A stretch of DNA of 58,137 nt, filler included, from Mustelus asterias (lineage: Eukaryota), in NCBI RefSeq assembly GCF_964213995.1. It is 3 parts of 3 records of this genome, joined end to end, with 100 filler letters (N's around TTAATTAATTAA, not from the genome) between each part and the next. Parts side by side here need not be neighbours in the genome. Positions count along the whole stretch, not along the records: positions 43,896 to 58,137 come from NC_135823.1; 2 more parts are not named here. The stretch is one strand, 5' to 3'. Numbering within the stretch: position 1 is the stretch's first letter; each line of letters opens with the position of its first letter. Shown in pieces: positions 48,336 through 58,137 of this stretch. A program made the translations under genes and the position numbers. Below the pieces are notes generated by a model. That model did no database searches and was not told where the DNA came from. It saw nothing but the letters and a program-made list of their open reading frames with translations.

Positions 48336-50214
48336 AAAAAACTTTTGGTCGTTTCATTTTACTTTTACACAATACAATGTGTTTTATTTGAACCCTACAT
48401 GCCAGATCCTTTGGTTCACTGCACTGTGCTTTCGAAGAGATCATATTTTTGAAGAGTCAACTTTTCCCAAAGCTTTCGCTCCTTTTCTTAATTTTCCTCC
48501 CCAGCTTCCCTCTAATTCAGAGGGCAGTTGAGAGTCAGCCACGTGGCTTTGGGTGTGGAATCTAATGTAGGCCAAACCAGGTGAGGACGGCAGATTTCCT
48601 TCCCGAAACCAGTTGGATTTTACAGCAATCCGCAATGGTTCAATGGTTATCATTAGACTTTTAACCACAGACTTTTATTGAATTGAAATTTCACTAACTG
48701 CCTTGGTGGGATTCGAGCCCGTGTCCGCTCAGCATTTTCCTGGACCTCTGGATTAATCGTCCAGTGATAATCCCACTGTGCCACTCTCCCTCATAACCAT
48801 GTTGGGGATGGAGATGGCGGCGTTGGACTGAGCTGGGCACAGTCAGAAGTGTTAAAGGATAAGTTCCAACAGGTTTATTTGGAATCACGAGCTTTCGGGG
48901 CGTTGCTCATTCCTGAGGTGAGTGGAGAGCAAGGTTCACATTCACGGTCCATATAGAGAGAGACATAATTGCAAGATAATGGTTGGAATGCGAGTCTTTT
49001 CAGGTGATCCAGTCTTTACAGGTGCAGACCACCTTCTTTCGTCAGAAGAAAACATACAAAAGTCTGAGATCATGTACCAACCGACTCAAGAACAGCTTCA
49101 TCCCTGCTGCCGTCAGACTTTTGAATGGACCTACCATAAATTAAGCTGATCTTTCTCTACACTCTTGCTATGACTGTGACAGTACATTCTGCGTCCTCTA
49201 TTTTCCTGCTCCCGTATGTACTCTCTGAAATTTATGTTTTGTCTGCAAGTTTCAATAGTTTTCACTGTATCCCAATCCATGTGACAATAATAAATCAAAT
49301 CAAATCAAACATCTCCAACAAACAATGTTCAAACGCTGCCCATGTTTTCTTCATTATGAAGTATACAATTATTTCCAGAACAACAGGCCACTGTCACGGT
49401 GTTTGTAATCTACGCCAACCTCCTCCCACCCACACCCTACGAACCTCCTCCCCCGACCCCGCCCCCCCCCCCCCCGCAAACATGTTCTGTTATTATCTCC
49501 CTCCTGTGTTGACCCAATTTCCCCCTAAATTAGTATCTGATTTTCAACTCAACCAAGCCCTGTTGTATTGAGTTCCACATTCGACGCAATGTCTGGGAAA
49601 GACCTTTCTCCTGAACTCACCATTGGATATAGTAGGGAATATCTGGTGCTGGTGGTCCAATGTTCTTGTCTCCACTCATTTTGTATACCTCCATCCAATG
49701 GAATCTTTCATAACTTCCAAGACCTATTTTAGGTCATCCCACAGTCCAATAGTTTTACTGCAAAGAGCCTGTTCAATTTTAACTGATATCATAACATTAT
49801 ATTACTGGTAGCAATCTATTAAAATTGTTGCCCACAGTTAAACGTCACCCATCAGTTCTATACAAATGTCCTGTTACCTGACAGTCCAGATTCACTGAAC
49901 ACGTTTGGACTGATGTATCAGACAGTTTGAACTCTCACACACACAATGCTTGAGTTTGGAAGCATGCTGTAAAGTGATGGTTCTTTGGATATTCTCCTTC
50001 CTGCTCAAGCCCAAATGAAAGTATACAATTTTTTTTTAAAAAATCATTCACACAAGAAAGGGAAATATGTTGATCCTGTGCAGTAAGCAGATAGGCCCAA
50101 ATGTCAGCGTGCTCTTGACATGGGGCATGTTCCATTAGGCCTTAAGAATGTCCAACAGGTGATAAACAGTTGTCCTTTATTCTTTGTTGTTGATAATTCG
50201 GCCAGAAGAAGAAT

Positions 50215-50740
50215 GCGAGGTGGCAGTCGCTTGGACAGACTCAACCAACATTTCTTCTTTCTCAGGAGGCTACGAAAATTCAGCATGTCCACTCCGACGC
50301 TCGCCAACTTTTACCGATGGGGCATCGAAACCATTCTGAAAGGATGTGTCGCAGCTTGGTATGGCTCCTGCTCCAACCAAAACACAAAACATTACCAAGG
50401 GTGATGAATAAAGCCCAATCGATCACTCAAAACAGCCTCTCATAAATTGACAGTGTCTACACTCCCCGCTGCCTCGCAAAAGCAACGAGCATAATCAAGG
50501 ATCCTGCACACTCTGGACATATTCTCTTCCACCTACTTCCATCGGAAAAAGATATAAAATCCTGACGTCACGTTCCAATCGAGCAAGAACAGATTATTCT
50601 CTGCTGATGTCAAACTTTTGAATGAACCAACCTGGCATTAAGTTAATCTTTCTCTACACCGTAGCTACGAATGTAGCGTTATAATGTGTATTCTCCTTTC
50701 CTTCTCTATGAGTGGTATGCACGCAGGAAACAACTGCTTT
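50215..50740 (+). mobile_element. Rex1/Babar-like LINE 3' fragment
   Basis: HFFFLRRLRKFSMSTPTLANFYRWGIETILKGCVAAWYGSC resembles the Rex1/Babar RT C-terminal region. Confidence 0.75.
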
Positions 50741-50825
50741 CTTCCAATGACGAGAAAACAAACGAAACATTCTTCAGTACGTCATATCCCGGAAGCAGAA
50801 TATGAGCTCTCAGTTCCGTTAGCCG

Positions 50826-50870
50826 TTAGAGTCTGGGTTCTTCATTGAACGCCAGCCGGGCAGAAATAGT
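50826..50870 (-). pseudogene. Terminal cytoplasmic exon of the VJ-C1 gene (TISARLAFNEEPRL*)
   Basis: ttccattctattacag acceptor, phase 0 matching the previous exon, TAA stop. TISARL is one substitution (TCT/TAT) from TIYARL. Confidence 0.65.
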
Positions 50871-51248
50871 CTGTAATAGAATGGAAACACCATGATCATA
50901 AACCAGCCCATCTTCAGGGCGACGGGAAGGGGTACTTTATCCCTTCATGTCGTCCCCGGACATTTAGATAGGCAATCTCAACCCCATCTAACAATGTCAC
51001 TTCCACAAACGGTAAACCCGTTTACCCAACGTAAAACTATGAAACTAAGTTTCGATATTGTCACTTGATGTCCCATTCATAATGTAATTTATTGCTGGAA
51101 TGTTATAGGAATGGTTTATATTGTTATATGTGAGTATACACCATGCAAAGTTACATACGCTCATTTTACAGCAAGTATGATTCTTCCAAGTTAAATTGAA
51201 AATCCGGGAACCATATCTACAAATGATAAGAAGCAATTCTATACCTAC

Positions 51249-51307
51249 CGCCATTTCTTCTGGACGTGCTCTGTAGTTCGTCTGTTCCCCATCAATGTTC
51301 CTGTTAG
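51249..51307 (-). pseudogene. Cytoplasmic exon of the VJ-C1 gene (ANRNIDGEQTNYRARPEEMA)
   Basis: gtttttttttacag acceptor and GCG|gtaggt donor, phase 1 to 0. Confidence 0.7.
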
Positions 51308-51434
51308 CTGTAAAAAAAACAATTACAACTGATTGCAAATTGTCCCATTTCATACTGAACCGTCTGAAAGTGAAAGTGATCAATAAATTGATTGGGAGTC
51401 CCGCGCATATCGAAAGTCTCCCTGCAATCTGTAC

Positions 51435-51554
51435 CTTTCTGCCGGTTCGTGTAGATCCTTCTCCGGGACAGAAGGATTATTCCCAGAAGGAGAAGCGCCA
51501 CCATTGACGAACACCCAGAAAGCGGAAGAATGCAAAGGGGAAGTGACAGCGAAT
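51435..51554 (-). pseudogene. Transmembrane exon of the VJ-C1 gene (DSLSLPLCILPLSGCSSMVALLLLGIILLSRRRIYTNRQK)
   Basis: ttttgctctgcag acceptor and AAAG|gtacag donor, 120 nt, phase 1-1. A hydrophobic stretch is followed by RRR. Confidence 0.78.
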
Positions 51555-51764
51555 CTGCAGAGCAAAATAAACATTGTATTTAAGAAAAAAATCCGTAAAT
51601 CAAGCTGTTGGCCTCATATCGGGATTCAGTAAGACGGAATGTTCCTGTCCCGCCCGACACCGGAATCGTAGCGGGCGGGGGCTGACCATTGATCTCGGGC
51701 GGGGATTTCCGGCCTTGGGGCGAGAGCGGCCAGAAAATCCCAGTCAGTCAAAAGTACAGCTAAA

Positions 51765-52062
51765 ATATATTCATTAGTCACAAATAGGCTTTCCTTAACA
51801 CTGCAAACAAGTTACTGTGAAAATCGCCTAGTCACCACACTCCGGCGTCTGTTCGGGTGCACTGAAGGAGAATTTGGCACGGCCAATTCACCTAACCTGC
51901 ATGCCTTTGGACTGTGGGAGGAAACCGGAGCACCCGGAGGAAACCCACGCGGACGCGGGGAGAATGTGCAAACGCCACACAGACAGTGACCCAAGCCGAG
52001 AATCGTACACGGTTCCATGGCGCTGTCAGGCAGCAGTGCTAACCACAGTGCCAGCGTGCCAT
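51765..52062 (-). mobile_element. tRNA-derived SINE
   Basis: Reverse complement of the SINE head/body seen elsewhere in the window. Confidence 0.85.
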
Positions 52063-53711
52063 CCCAGTGACGGTAATCAATGCCAATCTTGTTCGTGTCA
52101 CCAACATTACCAGGGACAATTCGAAAATGGACAAACCTTGCATAAGGGAAGTGAATTTACCAAGTAAAAGCAGATGGATGCATGGGGGAAGAGATAGAGA
52201 GAGGGAAACAGAGTGAGAGAGGGAACGAAATAGAGAAGGATGTATCGAAATGAAGAAAGACAGATAAATATGTAGAGGAAAGGTTATACAGATGCATGGA
52301 GATGGATGCAGATGGATGGATGGATGGATTGATTGGTTCATGGACAGATGGACGGACGGACAGCTGGACGGATAGATGGAATGGTGGATAATGAACAGCA
52401 GACGGTAGGGTATAGAATGAGGAAATGAGGACCTCAATGTTTCTGAGCGCTTATTCGCAAATTAATTTGAAGTTAATCTCATTACCAAATTCCCTCTCGA
52501 GATTCTCGAACCCATCAGAAAATTACCCAAATTCGAATCTGCAATGCAACAGGTTCACCTCCACCCCCACAGCCCGTCAATCTGAGGAATACACCTCTCT
52601 CCCTGCATGTATTTGGCTTTCTATCCATCTTCCCACGTGTCTTTCACGCTTCGCCCTTTATTATTCCTAACAGCTATCTTACGAGATACATAGAAATCCA
52701 TGCACGTTATACCTAATGCATTCTCGTTTATTGTCCATTCGGATACTTCTTCCAAAATAACCTCCATTATACTTGTTAAACATGATTGCATTTTTACAAT
52801 TCGCTGCTGACTGTCCTAAGATGAAGCATCAGATCAATCCCAAGATGGGGTGCAATGCCTTCTCCTGTCAGCTTGGATCTTGTTTGTCTCCCTTGTGGGG
52901 ATCTTGAAATGGATTCAATCAGATTTTGAATTTGGCTTTTGAACCAAGCAAGGAATGGTTATCCGGTTCCTTCTGAATATTGGATTTGTAACTATAAGAT
53001 GAAGAAAAAAATTAAAATAAAAAAACCGATTAATTTTGGAATAGTCATAAATTTCACGTCGAATAATAGATGATAGACGCGTGTCCTCCACTCACTGCAT
53101 ACTTAATTCTTCATAATTACCCAACTGACTTCCAGTTGGATGCAACTTTCAAGGTACAGCGTTTCGTTAGGAAGGATCGAATTAGTGTTGATTTCCTCGT
53201 TCGGGCAGGTGATATGGATCGGATGAAAATATGTTTTTTTCTTTAGTGTTAGGGTTAGTGGGTGGTTTCTTGCAAGGGATAGCGTTCAGGTTAATATTAG
53301 CATTAGCCTTAGGTTAGGGAGAAGATGAGTGTTGAGGTTATTTTCGGGCATTACACTCAGAAAAAATAGTGTTTAAAACGGATAGATGGGGGAAATTGAT
53401 ATAGGATCCAGATACACACATAATTGATACAAAGGTTAATATAACCGTAAGCACAAGCAACAGGATGTGTGAGTGACGCACAAGTAAATCGAATTGAAAA
53501 GCTGAAGGGCTATGTTGAATTATCATCACCGTTAGTTAGGAGAACACTTGTACTCCTGTGAATGACTCTGGTGTTTACATTATTGAATGAATATAGAGGG
53601 ATGGGGAATCTGGGACAAGGAAACTGTATTCGGATTGTACCGAAACAGAGAGTTTATAATTATTTGGAAAGGTGGAATAGGTTGAGTCTCTTTAGCTTGG
53701 ACCTGACATAG

Positions 53712-56700
53712 ATGGGTGACGTTGAGAGGGGCTGGGAGGAAGCAGTCAGTGCAGGGATCCCCTGTGGTCGTTCCCCTTTGCAACAAGTATTCCGCTTTGG
53801 ATACGGTTAAGGGGGACGACATACCAGTGGTGAGCAGCAGTGAGAGGATCTCCAGCACTTTGTCCGTCTGTGTGGCTCAGGAGGGTAAGGGGGAGAGCGG
53901 GAGGACAATAGTTATTGGGGACTCGTTAATTAGAGGGATGGATAGGAGGTTCTGTGGCAGGAAAAGATCTTGAGGATGGTATGTTGCCTACCAGATGCCA
54001 GGGTCCGTGACGTCTCGGACCGTGTCTTACGGATTCTTAAGGGGGAGGGAAAACAGTCACAAGTCGTGGTACACATTGGTACCAACGACATAGGTAAGAG
54101 AAGGGACGGGGATTTAAAACAGGAATTTCGGGAACTGGGCTGGAAGCTGAGAGCCAAGACAAAACATGTGGTCATCTCTGGTACGTTACCGGTGCCACGT
54201 GATCGCGAGTTGAGGAACAGGGAGAGAGTGCAGTTAAACATGTGGTTGCAGGGATGGTGTAGGAGGGAGGGTTTCAGATACGTGGATAATTGGAACACAT
54301 TCTGGGGAAGGTGGGACCTGTACAAACAGGAAAGGGTGCACCTGAACCAGAGGGGCACCAATATCCTGGGAGGGAAATTTGCTACGGCTCTTCAGGGGGG
54401 TTTAAACTAATTTGTCAGGGGAGTGGGAAAAGGAGTTGTAGTCCAGAAGTCAGTGTTGAGGGTGGTGAGGTATTGGGGAAGGTATCAAGGTCAGGGGTGG
54501 GTACCGGTAGACAGGAAGGTGGGTTGAAGTGTGTCTACTTCAATGCAAGGAGCATCCGGAACAAAGTAGATGAACTTGGGGCGTGGATTGGTACTTGGGA
54601 CTACGATGTTGTGGCCATTACGGAGACGTGGGTAGAACAAGGACAGGAATGGTTCTTGGACGTTCCGGGGTATAGATGCTTCAGTAAGTGTAGGGAAGCT
54701 GGTAAAAGAGGTGGAGGAGTGGCATTGTTAATCAAGGATAGTAAAACGGCTGCGGAAAGACACTTCGAGGGGGATCTGCACACTGAGGTAATATGGGCTG
54801 AAGTTAGAAATAGGAAAGGAACGGTCACGTTGTTAGGAGTTTACTATAGGCACCCAAATAGTAATAGAGAATGTGAAGGAAGAAATTGCCAAGCAGATTA
54901 TGGATAGGTGTGGGGGTCACATGGTAGTTGTCATGGGGGACTTTAACTTTCCAAATATTGATTGGAACCTTTGTAGGTCAGATAGTTCGTATGGGGCAGT
55001 TTTTGTGCAGTGTGTGCAGGAGGGTTTCCTGGCACAATATGTGGATAGGCCGACAAGAGGTGAGGCCACATTGGATTTGGTACTGGGAAATGAACCGGGC
55101 CAAGTGTTAGATTTGGTTGTGGGAGAGCACTTTGGAGATAGTGACCACAATTCGGTGTCTTTTGTTATTGCAATGGAGAGGGAAAGGGCCGTACGGCAGG
55201 GAAAGGTTTACAATTGGGGCAGAGATAATTATGATGCGATTAGGCCAGAATTAGGGGGCATAAGATGGGAACAGAAACTGTCAGGGAAAGGCACTAATGA
55301 AAAGTGGAACCATTTCAAGGAAGAAATACTGGGTGTCCTTGATAGGTATGTCCCTGTCCGAGGAACTGGCCGAGTGAGGGAACCATGGTTCACGAAAGAG
55401 GTGGAATGTCTTGTGAAAAGGAAGAGGGAAGCTTATGTTAGGGATGAGGAAACAAGGTTCAGATGGCTCGATTGAGGGTTACAAGTTAGCAAAGAATGAG
55501 TTGAAAAAGGGGCTTCGGAGAGCTTGCAGGGGACATGAGGAGTCCTTGGCGGGTCAGATCAAGGAAAACCCCAAGGCTTTTTACTCTTATGTGAGGAATA
55601 AAAGAATGACCAGGGTGAGGTTAGGGCCGGTCAAGGACAGTAGTGGGAACTTGTGTATGGAGTCAGTAGAGATAGGCGAGATGATGAATGAATACTTTTC
55701 TTCAGTGTTCACCAAGGAGAGGGGCCATGTTTTTGAGGAAGAGAAGGTGTTACAGGCTAATAGGCTGGAGGAAATAGTTGGTCGGAGGGAGGATGTACTG
55801 GCAGTTTTGAATAAACTGAAGGTCTATAAGTCCCCTGGGCCTGATGAAATATATCCTAGGATTCTTTGGGAGGCAACGGTTGAGATTGCAGAGCCTTTGG
55901 CTTTGATCTTTGGGTCCTCACTGTCCATGGGGATGGTGCCAGAGGAGTGGAGTATGGCGAATGTTGTTCCTCTGTTTAAGAAAGGGAATAGAAATGACCC
56001 TGGTAATTATAGACCGGTTAGTTTTACTTCGGTGGTTGGTAAATTGATGGAAAAGGTCCTTAGGGATGGGATTTACGACCATTTAGAAAGATGCGGATTA
56101 ATCCGGGATAGTCAGCACGGATTCGTGAAGGGCAAGTCGTGCCTCACAAATTTGATAGAATTTTTTGAGGAGGTTACTAAGTTTGTTGATGAAGGTAGGG
56201 CAGTTGATGTCATATACATGGATTTTAGTAAGGTGTTTGATACGGTCCCCCATGGTCGGCCTATGATGAAAGTAAGGAGCTGTGGGATAGAGGGAAAGTT
56301 GGCAGATTGGATAGGTAATTGGCTATCTGATGGAAGGCAGAGGGTGGTGGTGGATGGAAAATGTTCTGACTGGAGGCAGGTTGCTGGCGGAGTGCCACAT
56401 GGATCAGTGCTTGGTCCTCTGCTCTTTGTGATTTTTATTAATGACTTAGAGGAGGGGGCTGAAGGGTGGATCAGTAAATTTGTTGATGACACCAAGGTTG
56501 GTGGAGTAGTGGATGAGGTGGAGGGCTGTTGTAGGCTGCAAAGAGACATAGATAGGATGCAAAGCTGGGCTGAAAAATGGCAAATGGAGTTTAAGACTGA
56601 TAAATGTGAGGTGATTCATTTTGGTAGGAATAATTTTAATGTGGATTTCACGTTCAAAGGTAGGGTTCTGAAGACTGTGGAGGAACAGAGAGATCTTGGG

Positions 56701-57378
56701 GTCCATATGCACAGATCTCTAAAGGTTGCCACTCAAGTGGATAGAGCTGTGAAGAAGGCCTATCGTGTGTTAGCTTTTATTAACAGGGGGTTGGAGTTTA
56801 AGAGCCGTGGGGTTATGCTGCAACTGTACAGGACCTGGTGAGACCACATTTGGAATATTGTGTGCAGTTCTGGTCACCTCACTATAAGAAGGATGTGGAA
56901 GCGCTGGAAAGAGTGCAGAGGAGATTTACCAGGATGCTGCCTGGTTTGGAGGGTAGGTTTTATGAGGAAAGGTTGAGGGAGGTAGGGCTGTTCTCTCTGG
57001 AGCGGAGGAGGCTGAGGGGAGACTTAATAGAGGTTTATAAAATGATGAAGGGGATAGATAGAGTGAACGTTCAAAGACTATTTCCTCCGGTGGATGGAGC
57101 TATTATAAGGGGGCATACTATAGGGTTCATGGTGGGAGATATAGGAAGGACATCAGAGGTAGGTTCTTTACGCAGAGAGTGGTTGGGGTGTGGAATGGAC
57201 TGCCTGCAGTGATAGTGGAGTCAGACACTTTAGGAACATTTCAGCGGTTATTCGATAGGCACATGGAGCACACCAGGATGATATGGAGTGGGATATCTTG
57301 ATCGTGGTTTCAGATAAAGCTCGGCACAACATTGTGGGCCGAAGGGCCTGTTCTGTGCTGTACTGTTCTATGTTCTAT
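53712..57378 (+). mobile_element. Long CR1 LINE (SGNH-esterase ORF1 + APE/RT ORF2, several stops/frameshifts) in the C1-TM intron of the VJ-C1 gene, antisense
   Basis: IVIGDSLIRG and VVHIGTNDIG (SGNH esterase); [19 protein letters not shown] (APE); PHGSVLGP, KFVDD (RT); (TTCTATG)n tail. Confidence 0.95.
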
Positions 57379-57584
57379 GACACAGAGACTGTTAAGTTGT
57401 TGACGCATAACTAACGAATGCAGAGACTGTGCAATTAACAATCACAAGAAGTTTATTATTTATTAGTGCCACAAGTAGGCTTGCATTAACACTGCAACGA
57501 AGAATAAATAAACGTGAAAGGTTCAAGCAAAAATAAACGTTGCTAACAAATTACTAAAAATATGAGGAAAATGTTGGTATCTCC

Positions 57585-57915
57585 CTCTCTCAGATGAGAC
57601 ACTTCCACTGACAAGATGTTGACTGGAGTTGATCTGAACGGCGCAGTTCCACCGAGCTCCACTGTTCATCGATCCCGCCTGGAGAATTATGTAACGGCTG
57701 GATGTATAATTTCCATCTGGATCGATGGCACCAGAATCAATCCTGCGTCCATAACCGGCCAGAAACATCCCAGTGGATGGCAAAGTGATCTTGATCCACA
57801 CTCTTCACCGCACACACCAAAGGGACCACTTCCATCCAGCGAACTTCAACCAGTGGTAGAGTTAAGAGGTAGATGATTGGAGTTCCGGGAGTGATAGATG
57901 GATAATACTGAGGCA
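57585..57915 (-). pseudogene. Ig C1-set exon of the VJ-C1 gene, frameshifted
   Basis: TPIIYLLTLP..VPLVCAVKSVDQDHFAIHWDVSG, then a frame change near 57740-57765, then DSGAIDPDGNYTSSRYIIL..NSGARWNCAV..LVSGSVS. This shows the C1 hallmarks PxIY, LVC, W, DGxY and WxC. The acceptor position is uncertain and the donor reads GG rather than GT. Confidence 0.8.
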
Positions 57916-57977
57916 CTATTGGACATTCATTTCCTGGTTATTCATGATACGATGGCGCAAATGATCGTTTTCTTTAC

Positions 57978-58137
57978 CTGTAATGAGCAATGCAGAACTG
58001 TTTGCAAACATAAAACGCATCCCACTGAACTGGCTCGCTGCACAGTAATACAGCCGCGAATCAATGGCCCGGACCCCCGCGATGCTTAGGGAATAGAGGG
58101 GCAATTTGTCATTACGTTGTCAGGAATTCAGGAAGCT
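57978..58137 (-). pseudogene. 3' part of a germline-joined VJ exon (continues beyond the window)
   Basis: YSLSIAGVRAIDSRLYYCAASQFSGMRFMFANSSALLIT-G|gtaaag: the V F-strand DSxLYYC is contiguous with a J-like FxNxSxLLIT strand, with no RSS between them. There is an in-frame TGA at 58120-58122. Confidence 0.82.

Follow-up and report, generated by a model that had tools for sequence, protein, structure and literature searches.

A probable pseudogene in Mustelus asterias from a conserved family of non-rearranging VJ-C1 receptors

Exon structure of the locus

The locus lies on the minus strand of the last piece (positions 43896-58137) of the window, by which we mean the whole 58,137-nt stretch of Mustelus asterias DNA that was analyzed. 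The sequence supports a model of a germline-joined gene in which VJ, C1, transmembrane (TM) and cytoplasmic exons would be spliced together. Five minus-strand exons with compatible phases were found at or near the places where an earlier note on this DNA had put them. All six exon pieces were collinear in an alignment with 13 members of a family of elasmobranch genes, the VJ-C1-TM family described below, and each piece also aligned separately by BLASTP, the window exons having been searched one by one. The collinear family match rules out a chance juxtaposition of exons, and the presence of introns rules out a processed retro-copy. Six runs that contain the stretch were listed, none of which was recorded as RNA.

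The VJ exon is represented by its 3' part (57978-58137, minus strand), truncated at the edge of the piece. It encodes FR3 (LYSLSIAGVRAIDSRLYYC), with YYC at 58050-58042, a CDR3-like loop of 11 aa and the J-like strand FANSSALLIT (57979-58008, minus strand), and it ends in a phase-1 G at the donor (G|gt). Neither heptamer nor nonamer was found between YYC and the J-like strand, and V and J are contiguous in the DNA, as the earlier note had read them. The spacing of 11 aa between Cys and J is shared by the family in 35 of 42 instances. The family J motif, FGNGS (FGNG[ST] in 30 of the 42 motif instances), is degraded to FANSS in the window, but some annotated family members vary there too (FANGS, FAKGS or FGNAS), so that the J change alone is no proof of decay. 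The V piece matched residues 83-127 of P0009, the family member from Scyliorhinus torazame, and gave a sub-threshold V-set match in Pfam (E 0.019). Its best matches in the PDB were Ig lambda chains, with an alignment that runs across V and J and includes FGGGTKL.

The VJ-C1 intron (57886-57977, minus strand) is 92 nt long, which bears out the very short intron claimed earlier; it has an intact GT donor at 57977-57976 and a pyrimidine tract. The C1-type Ig exon that follows (57585-57885, minus strand; 301 nt) has borders placed by alignment with family proteins. Its first piece, searched alone in a library of 1.84 billion proteins, retrieved family members from S. torazame, Mustelus, Cetorhinus and Mobula at E values from 2.8e-8 to 3.2e-4. 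Both C1 pieces of the window align to the family C1 domain, with at most about 56% identity between the window C1 and any member retrieved. Pfam searches of the window pieces gave nothing for C1 or TM. A 93-aa open reading frame over the second C1 half returned no homologous protein, a blank explained by the length and word limits of the search, and the acetylcholine-binding protein and lipase chaperone that the PDB offered for the second C1 piece were dismissed as chance-level matches (E 0.3-1.1).

The TM exon (51435-51554, minus strand; phase 1/1) encodes SLSLPLC ILPLSGCSSMVALLLLGIILLS RRRIYTNRQK and has splice sites at both ends (ctgcag| and |gtacag). Its best local match was to P0062 (E 1.5e-6); the stalk Cys and the RRR are kept, and the TM core is uncharged. 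Cytoplasmic exon 1 (ANRNIDGEQTNYRARPEEMA; 51249-51307, minus strand; phase 1 in, 0 out) has weak sequence similarity by itself (BLASTP E 2.6) and was placed in the model because of its position, phases and splice sites. Cytoplasmic exon 2 (50826-50870, minus strand) encodes TISARLAFNEEPRL* with a TAA stop and is homologous to the C-terminal end of the family, ..TLYARLAFNEDPTL*, with 71% identity over 14 aa to P0016, P0012 and P0019; the C-terminal pattern ..ARLAFNE.P.L is common to the window copy and the family, and the tail spans some 45 aa. A decayed LINE lies on the plus strand in the C1-TM intron, antisense to the gene, at approximately 53700-57400; its GDSL-esterase ORF1, APE endonuclease and reverse transcriptase were recognized.

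Defects of the window copy

The V domain carries an in-frame TGA (58120-58122, minus strand) inside an exact contig of run X1. The exact Logan contig of this run covers 57755-58137 with 0 differences, and this corroboration of the TGA comes from one sample, possibly the assembly's own. The acceptor position of intron 1 (57887-57886) reads CG, and the base at 57887 gives AG in three X1 contigs and in contigs of X3, X4 and X5. Use of an alternative in-phase AG at 57917-57916 would leave an intron of 62 nt and add 10 residues that are absent from the family. The C1 exon lacks 2 nt within 57747-57758, its 301 nt comparing with the 303 needed for phase 1-1, and because of this loss the upstream C1 frame runs into a TGA at 57739-57737. 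Two paralogue contigs each carry 2 more nt at this gap; exact X1 contigs meet at 57755-57757, where the 2-nt gap is unbridged under the 31-letter rule. The expected phase-1 C1 donor, at a boundary set by the family alignment, is GG (57583-57584, minus strand), and a cryptic in-phase GT lies near it at 57554-57553.

Residues have been lost as well as reading frame and splice sites. In the C1 exon neither the conserved '..ETW..' Trp nor the first CxC Cys survives, and the Tyr of the ITIM/ITSM-like tail motif is replaced by Ser at 50864-50862 (TISARL); since the homologous exon itself is still there, this replacement points to a decayed member of the family and not to a non-member. Of 20 columns that are invariant in the family, 5 are broken in the window, and real members, left out in turn, break 0-4 among 17-24 invariant columns. 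In the C1 tree the window copy is sister to P0009 (support 99/96) on an end branch of 0.57, the sister's branch being 0.28 and the median 0.088. The copy probably arose by duplication within the family, with the S. torazame gene as its nearest relative, and then decayed.

The TGA in V, the 2-nt loss from C1 and the altered splice positions (CG and GG) mark the copy as a pseudogene member of the family. The earlier note had called it dead on the strength of the TGA, the C1 frameshift and the GG donor, all of which were recovered; the CG acceptor and the Tyr-to-Ser change are new. That the copy is functional and its defects are assembly errors is scarcely credible: long-read assemblies do contain single-base errors and the 2-nt gap sits where exact Logan contigs end, but the defects are at least six, independent and different in kind, the TGA and the CG acceptor both fall within an exact 409-nt contig, substitutions have hit invariant residues, and the C1 branch is long. 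The locus very probably represents a pseudogene from a conserved family of non-rearranging VJ-C1 receptors, a family of cartilaginous fish with amphibian and reptile relatives.

The VJ-C1-TM family

The window copy shares with the elasmobranch family its exon order, phases, 11-aa VJ loop, C1 domain, stalk Cys and uncharged TM; it differs in being broken at several points, with Ser for the tail Tyr. At least 40 elasmobranch models in RefSeq belong to the family, whose relatives occur in turtles, alligator, lizard, frog and Callorhinchus. The matches listed numbered 24 proteins with P0009 as query and 50 with a family profile, the latter including proteins of Alligator (7e-60), Chelonoidis (5.5e-46), Ascaphus (6.4e-30) and Callorhinchus (3e-28). 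The names that the sources give to members are automatic only ("Ig lambda-like", "Mem5-like"), as in XP_072346820 of S. torazame ('immunoglobulin lambda-1 light chain-like') and a Heterodontus model ('Ig heavy chain Mem5-like'), and no description of an elasmobranch VJ-C1-TM family was found in the searchable literature. The earlier note had suggested that intact paralogues may lie nearby; at least four related contigs of about 83-92% identity occur in the same sample as the window copy, and many elasmobranchs have intact homologues.

An intact member is a type I membrane protein of about 300 aa, built of a leader, a germline VJ domain (FGNGS), one C1-set domain, a stalk Cys, an uncharged TM and a tail of about 45 aa. 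The germline-encoded J strand, FGNG[S/T]xL, doubles as an N-glycosylation sequon. The TM after the membrane-proximal Cys is uncharged and is followed by a basic stop-transfer sequence, and the tail ends in [S/T/I]xYAx[L/V] in 38 of 46 family rows. Among the aligned members, Pfam matches at E <= 0.001 were obtained to V-set in 11 of 11 and to C1-set in 9 of 11; P0009, the only member tabulated, scored above both curated Pfam cut-offs (V-set and C1-set). The same architecture was found in the turtle and frog relatives, whose second domain also lies above the Pfam C1-set cut-off.

The family is multigene, conserved and like Ig light chains and TCR chains in its fold. An AF2 model of P0009, with a moderate mean pLDDT of 62, had its best fold matches among Ig lambda light chains and TCR beta chains. 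When the PDB was searched with the family profile and with the P0009 C1 domain, multi-domain antibodies crowded the results, and TCR, IgL and UrIg did not separate; none of the 60 matches listed in those searches was a UrIg entry. Feature-based Atlas neighbours included SIRP and TAPBPL clusters.

TCR and Ig light chains share with the family a V-J-C1 ectodomain, and the best fold and sequence matches are to Ig lambda and TCR beta; TCR chains share in addition a phase-1 J-C splice and a membrane-proximal extracellular Cys. TCR chains have one or more charged TM residues and a very short tail, whereas in the family the TM is uncharged and the tail, about 45 aa long, bears a Tyr motif. The window departs further from TCR and Ig light-chain genes in having V and J undivided and free of RSS and in its very short J-C intron, and whereas Ig light chains are secreted and have no TM exon, the window has TM and cytoplasmic exons that are homologous to those of the family and would be spliced to the exons upstream. 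Since its TM is uncharged, its tail is about 45 aa long and it has no RSS, the gene is not that of a TCR or an Ig light chain, in agreement with the earlier note, which had set its TM core and tail apart from those of TCR.

Another reading takes the locus for a TCR or Ig light-chain gene of the rearranging kind, germline-joined by RAG or otherwise captured as a copy, that has since decayed. Apart from the Ig lambda V-J matches of the V piece in the PDB, the window V reads 'YYCAAS', and this together with a J-like strand and a phase-1 donor resembles a rearranged TCR-alpha or IgL VJ; germline-joined Ig genes also occur in sharks. Such an origin is nevertheless very improbable, as the TM and tail exons find their homologues in a family whose uncharged TM, long tail and Tyr motif are absent from TCR and IgL, the loop length is constant over paralogues and species, turtle and frog have the same architecture, and the introns are still present.

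Linkage and relation to other VJ receptors

The earlier note had described a VJC1-type receptor in the same orientation as RSS-bearing TCR V segments some 20 kb away. The VJ-C1 architecture stands, but the linkage fails because the window joins unrelated pieces end to end. Neither a neighbouring gene nor a further V segment turned up when the locus's own 14-kb piece (43896-58137) was searched, and RSS-like V ends and additional family exons were likewise absent from it. The TCR V segments seem adjacent because separate pieces were joined, and a false lead is thereby removed.

A pre-RAG-type VJ-C1 relic in physical linkage with TCR V segments that bear RSS, the arrangement expected if rearranging receptors originated by RSS insertion into such a gene, is a quite improbable description of the locus. 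The gene is of the non-rearranging VJ-C1 type, and PMC12227049 places UrIg2, another non-rearranging shark gene, in linkage with the TCR-alpha/delta-IgH complex, so that linkage of a VJ-C1 gene is possible in principle. Against it stand the concatenation of the window and the content of the piece. In Chiloscyllium punctatum and Mobula birostris, moreover, the family lies on contigs of 84.1 and 250.7 Mb and proteins with V and nine C1 domains lie on contigs of 76.2 and 148.7 Mb, a comparison that is indirect because the latter proteins fit the published architecture of UrIg2 and are assigned to it on that basis.

UrIg and UrIg2 (Flajnik and colleagues, 2023 and 2025) resemble the family in having a non-rearranging single-exon VJ followed by C1-type domains, and in occurring in elasmobranchs. 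According to PMC12227049, UrIg, a 'nonrearranging shark antibody', is linked to the MHC, elasmobranchs alone have kept the UrIg genes, and UrIg2, which has nine C1 domains in nurse shark, also has a TM/cytoplasmic end. The family differs from both in its one C1 domain, stalk Cys, Tyr-motif tail, multigene organization and tetrapod relatives. The window likewise lacks the several C1 domains of UrIg2, its one C1 exon being followed by a TM exon; P0002, a protein with V and nine C1 domains, was the next-best match of the window C1 piece after P0001.

With one V-J, one C1, a stalk Cys and a TM, the chain plan of the family resembles a TCR or Ig light chain more closely than that of UrIg or UrIg2 does, and a family common to sharks, amphibians and reptiles would date back at least to the jawed-vertebrate crown groups. 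Non-rearranging VJ-C1 genes are the sought relatives of the gene that was split by the RAG transposon to give antibodies and TCRs. That the family is a third, so far undescribed non-rearranging VJ-C1 lineage of cartilaginous fish beside UrIg and UrIg2 is conceivable, though we regard it as doubtful; if it were true, it would point to an inhibitory germline receptor as the ancestral state. Placement of the family on chromosomes and in V and C1 trees would bear on the model of a proto-MHC/antigen-receptor complex.

The tetrapod relatives invite comparison with PRARP, reportedly described in chicken by Fu and colleagues in 2019, and with tetrapod 'VJ-C1', reportedly described by Ohta and colleagues in the same year, both said to be non-rearranging VJ members of the IgSF with an ITIM-like tail. 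PRARP is said to form disulfide-linked dimers and to have orthologues in fish, amphibians and reptiles. The family has a VJ, a Tyr motif and a stalk Cys, and its turtle, alligator and frog relatives could be PRARP or tetrapod VJ-C1 genes. The VJC1/PRARP-type label of the earlier note stays at the level of a resemblance. The orthologues are, however, reportedly V-C2 and the chicken PRARP genes V only, whereas the second domain of the shark family matches the Pfam C1-set (E <= 0.001 in the 9 of 11 members noted above). PRARP is listed among joined-VJ genes in PMC10751288 and PMC11599192.

The dead locus by itself says little on function, and the window copy cannot perform the receptor functions proposed here for intact members; it leads to a conserved multigene family of sharks and rays with a single-chain V-J-C1-TM plan and tetrapod relatives. 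NITR, SIRP, CD8 and NKp30 resemble the family in having a germline VJ-type V, in being multigene and fast-evolving, and in a Tyr-based tail motif. SIRPs are V-C1-C1, NKp30 and CD8 have V only, and NITRs are not known to have a C1, on which ground an NITR identity was rejected; none of the four was among the sequence homologues retrieved. In function the family may be likened to NITR, SIRP-alpha and KIR-type paired receptors, and not to clonal antigen receptors. The germline-diversified V domains of intact members would bind ligands, and the stalk Cys, to judge from the motif, may join two chains by a disulfide bond in the manner of TCR and Ig chains. The tail motif suggests that its Tyr, once phosphorylated, could recruit SH2 phosphatases or adaptors for inhibitory or modulating signalling. 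The form TxYxxL is not that of a textbook ITIM.

Exon structure and decay of the window copy

All five exons listed in the earlier note were recovered when the minus strand of the NC_135823.1 piece (43896-58137, with a single N gap at 45972-46148) was re-read. The 3' part of the V exon, which extends to the edge of the piece at 58137, runs uninterrupted past YYC (58050-58042) and across a loop of 11 residues into a J-like strand, FANSSALLIT (58008-57979), and ends at a phase-1 donor (G/gtaaag; GT at 57977-57976). A heptamer was looked for between YYC and J and none was found; the four CACAGTG/CACTGTG matches in the whole piece all lie within repeats elsewhere. An intron of 92 nt separates the VJ exon from the C1-type exon (57885-57585), and an intron of about 6 kb separates the latter from the TM exon (51554-51435, phase 1/1). 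Two cytoplasmic exons follow (51307-51249 and 50870-50826), the second terminating in TAA. The TM and cytoplasmic exons have good splice sites.

The window copy is dead, as judged from its sequence, and the pseudogene call in the earlier note holds. The V exon contains a TGA at 58122-58120, Arg stands in place of an invariant Gly in DSGxYYC, and FANSS replaces the family's FGNGS in the J motif. Where the family has its exon border, the acceptor is CG (57887-57886). The C1 exon is 301 nt long, where a phase 1-1 exon requires 303, its upstream frame runs into a TGA (57739-57737), and it has lost both a conserved Trp and the leading Cys of CxC. The expected C1 donor is GG (57584-57583), with an in-phase GT 30 nt further on, and the tail Tyr is replaced by Ser. 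In the alignment, the window copy broke 5 of 20 invariant family columns, compared to 0-4 among 17-24 columns for real members left out one at a time. A 44-row tree of C1 placed the window copy as sister to the Scyliorhinus torazame family member P0009 (99/96), and the pair fell within a starred clade comprising 10 rows of carcharhiniform and lamniform genes. The window copy was flagged as a long branch (end branch of 0.57, compared to 0.28 in its sister and 0.088 as the median), so the support overstates the certainty of its exact position. On this tree, the source would be a galeomorph shark, probably a carcharhiniform one.

Logan contigs of four sequencing runs were compared with 57400-58137 at a likeness of at least 80%. 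Run X1, possibly a sample of the assembly itself, covered 57617-57757 and 57755-58137 with exact contigs (0 differences), confirming the TGA in V and the CG acceptor, and a second sample (X3) gave an exact piece at 57900-58051. Four further X1 contigs across the V-C1 region had about 83-92% identity and similar depth, so the X1 genome contains at least four copies related to this one. Three of these four contigs have the base at 57887 that yields AG, as do contigs from X3, X4 and from the relative X5, and two of the four (records 3 and 4) have two additional bases apiece within 57747-57758 that restore the frame precisely. A 2-nt deletion in the C1 exon of the window copy thus appears well supported, short of proof because the exact X1 contigs do not bridge the spot under the 31-letter rule. 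Just downstream of the C1 exon, 57450-57524 is an extremely high-copy repeat with a summed contig depth of 10^5-10^6 in all four runs, related organism included; its loose ends resemble a SINE/LINE tail junction.

The receptor family: domain plan, conservation, copy number and fold

The match between the window exons and an elasmobranch receptor family exceeds chance. Each window piece was searched alone, exon by exon, and the first half of the C1 exon (58 aa) by itself detected eight of 1.84 billion representative proteins at E <= 0.001. Four of the eight were elasmobranch proteins of about 265-412 aa (S. torazame, Mustelus asterias, Cetorhinus maximus and Mobula hypostoma) with the order leader, V, FGNGSKLxIT, C1, stalk Cys and TM, except that the Cetorhinus model P0005 ends after the C1 domain; the three complete models have a tail with xYAxL near the C terminus. 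The V, two C1, TM and both cytoplasmic pieces of the window aligned in the correct order along 13 family proteins. In BLASTP searches, each piece found the matching part of the family except the short first cytoplasmic exon, whose similarity was weak (E 2.6). The gene type proposed in the earlier note, VJ-C1-TM-cytoplasmic with no heptamer between V and J, was thereby upheld.

A search with P0009 detected 24 proteins and a profile built from 11 members detected 50. Pooled with the C1-piece search, elasmobranch matches came from 17 species, including Heterodontus, Cetorhinus, Carcharodon, Rhincodon, Stegostoma, Hemiscyllium, two Chiloscyllium, two Scyliorhinus, Mustelus, two Mobula, Hypanus, Pristis and Leucoraja. 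The profile also detected relatives of the same plan in Alligator (7e-60), Chelonoidis (5.5e-46), Trachemys, Lacerta and Ascaphus (6.4e-30), and a partial relative in Callorhinchus (3e-28). One contig often carries several paralogs, with at least eight clusters on a 22-Mb contig of Heterodontus and eight on an 8-Mb scaffold of Cetorhinus. The models P0012 (Cetorhinus, 524 aa), P0062 (S. canicula, 548 aa) and P0070 (Alligator, 481 aa) apparently join two units, which is consistent with tandem arrays and hints at tight spacing together with annotation errors. Source names were all automatic and mutually inconsistent (e.g., "Ig lambda-1 light chain-like", "Ig heavy chain Mem5-like", "TCR beta chain-like" and "uncharacterized").

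Among the aligned members, Pfam detected V-set in 11 of 11 and C1-set in 9 of 11 at E <= 0.001. P0009, the sole member tabulated, was above both curated cut-offs, and the turtle and frog relatives were likewise above that for C1-set. Of 46 rows, 38 carried the C-terminal motif [S/T/I]xYAx[L/V], and the other eight were truncated or alternative models. The AlphaFold2 model of P0009 was of moderate quality (mean pLDDT 62; about 70-85 in the Ig domains); its best fold matches were Ig lambda light chains, with TCR beta chains within the top 50, and the best match of the family sequence profile was a lambda V-J-C stretch. In 35 of 42 instances of the motif, Cys and J were spaced by 11 residues, exactly what a germline-encoded loop would give. 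Since V and J are contiguous in annotated genome models, we infer a non-rearranging family. The J motif, FGNGS or FGNGT from sharks to alligator and one turtle (Trachemys), doubles as an N-glycosylation sequon, which is retained in the frog FANGT and the window FANSS. The N-G-[S/T] sequon suggests a glycan on the surface through which antibody V domains pair.

In intact members, germline-diversified V domains would bind ligand, the membrane-proximal Cys may form disulfide-linked homo- or heterodimers, and the conserved tail Tyr, once phosphorylated, could recruit SH2-domain phosphatases or adaptors and so damp or tune leukocyte activation. The window copy performs none of these proposed functions.

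Relation to known joined VJ genes and to TCR V segments

PRARP, in the 2019 work of Fu and colleagues, reportedly has a J-like V, an ITIM-like tail and disulfide-linked dimers and extends from fish to birds, which would fit the tetrapod relatives of the family. Its second domain is reportedly called C2. Two papers count PRARP among the joined-VJ genes (PMC10751288; PMC11599192). UrIg is described in PMC12227049 as an MHC-linked nonrearranging shark antibody, and the UrIg genes are said there to persist in elasmobranchs only. UrIg, UrIg2 and the family all have non-rearranging VJ and C1-type domains, but a single C1 domain, a multigene nature and relatives in tetrapods rule out that the family is UrIg or UrIg2. 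No description of the shark family was found in open-access papers and bioRxiv, and it is apparently an undescribed shark branch of non-rearranging VJ-C1 receptors, to which the dead window locus is a pointer.

Gene type and pseudogene status thus stand from the earlier interpretation, whereas the claimed adjacency to RSS-bearing TCR V segments does not, because the window is stitched from unrelated pieces. Within 43896-58137, no second V, RSS-type V end or further family exon was found. According to the same paper (PMC12227049), UrIg2 is linked to the IgH/TCR-alpha-delta complex and has VJ and nine C1 domains in nurse shark. P0002 (Chiloscyllium punctatum) had one V-set and nine C1-set domains in a domain scan, and six stretches of P0003 (Mobula birostris, 1,428 aa) match the window C1 piece; both are candidate UrIg2 proteins, P0002 by its domain architecture. 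Both proteins (1159-1428 aa) are encoded on contigs other than those of family members of the same species, an indirect hint against TCR linkage if they are indeed UrIg2. Neither has a RefSeq name, and a Mobula hypostoma relative is labelled "titin-like".

Repeats and other elements in the piece

From 43896 to 50826, no gene-like ORF with a Pfam match was detected save one 29-aa ALKBH8_N-like match (50120-50401, E 2e-5), taken for repeat-derived. Simple repeats surround the assembly gap (44200-44330, 46220-46530 and 47900-48000) and include (TA)n-like, (CA/TG)n-rich sequence that reads as His/Thr ORFs, and a poly-Pro-coding run. The C1-TM intron contains a LINE on the plus strand, antisense to the gene (53700-57400), with a GDSL-esterase-type ORF1 (53970-54410), a split APE endonuclease (54290-55475) and a reverse-transcriptase ORF of 468 aa (55435-56841); its ORFs are broken into overlapping frames, so the element is decayed. 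The same intron contains a SINE-like element on the minus strand (51880-52080) that has 60% identity to residues 197-241 of the Hemiscyllium RefSeq isoform P0072, which probably contains an exonised or mis-annotated SINE.
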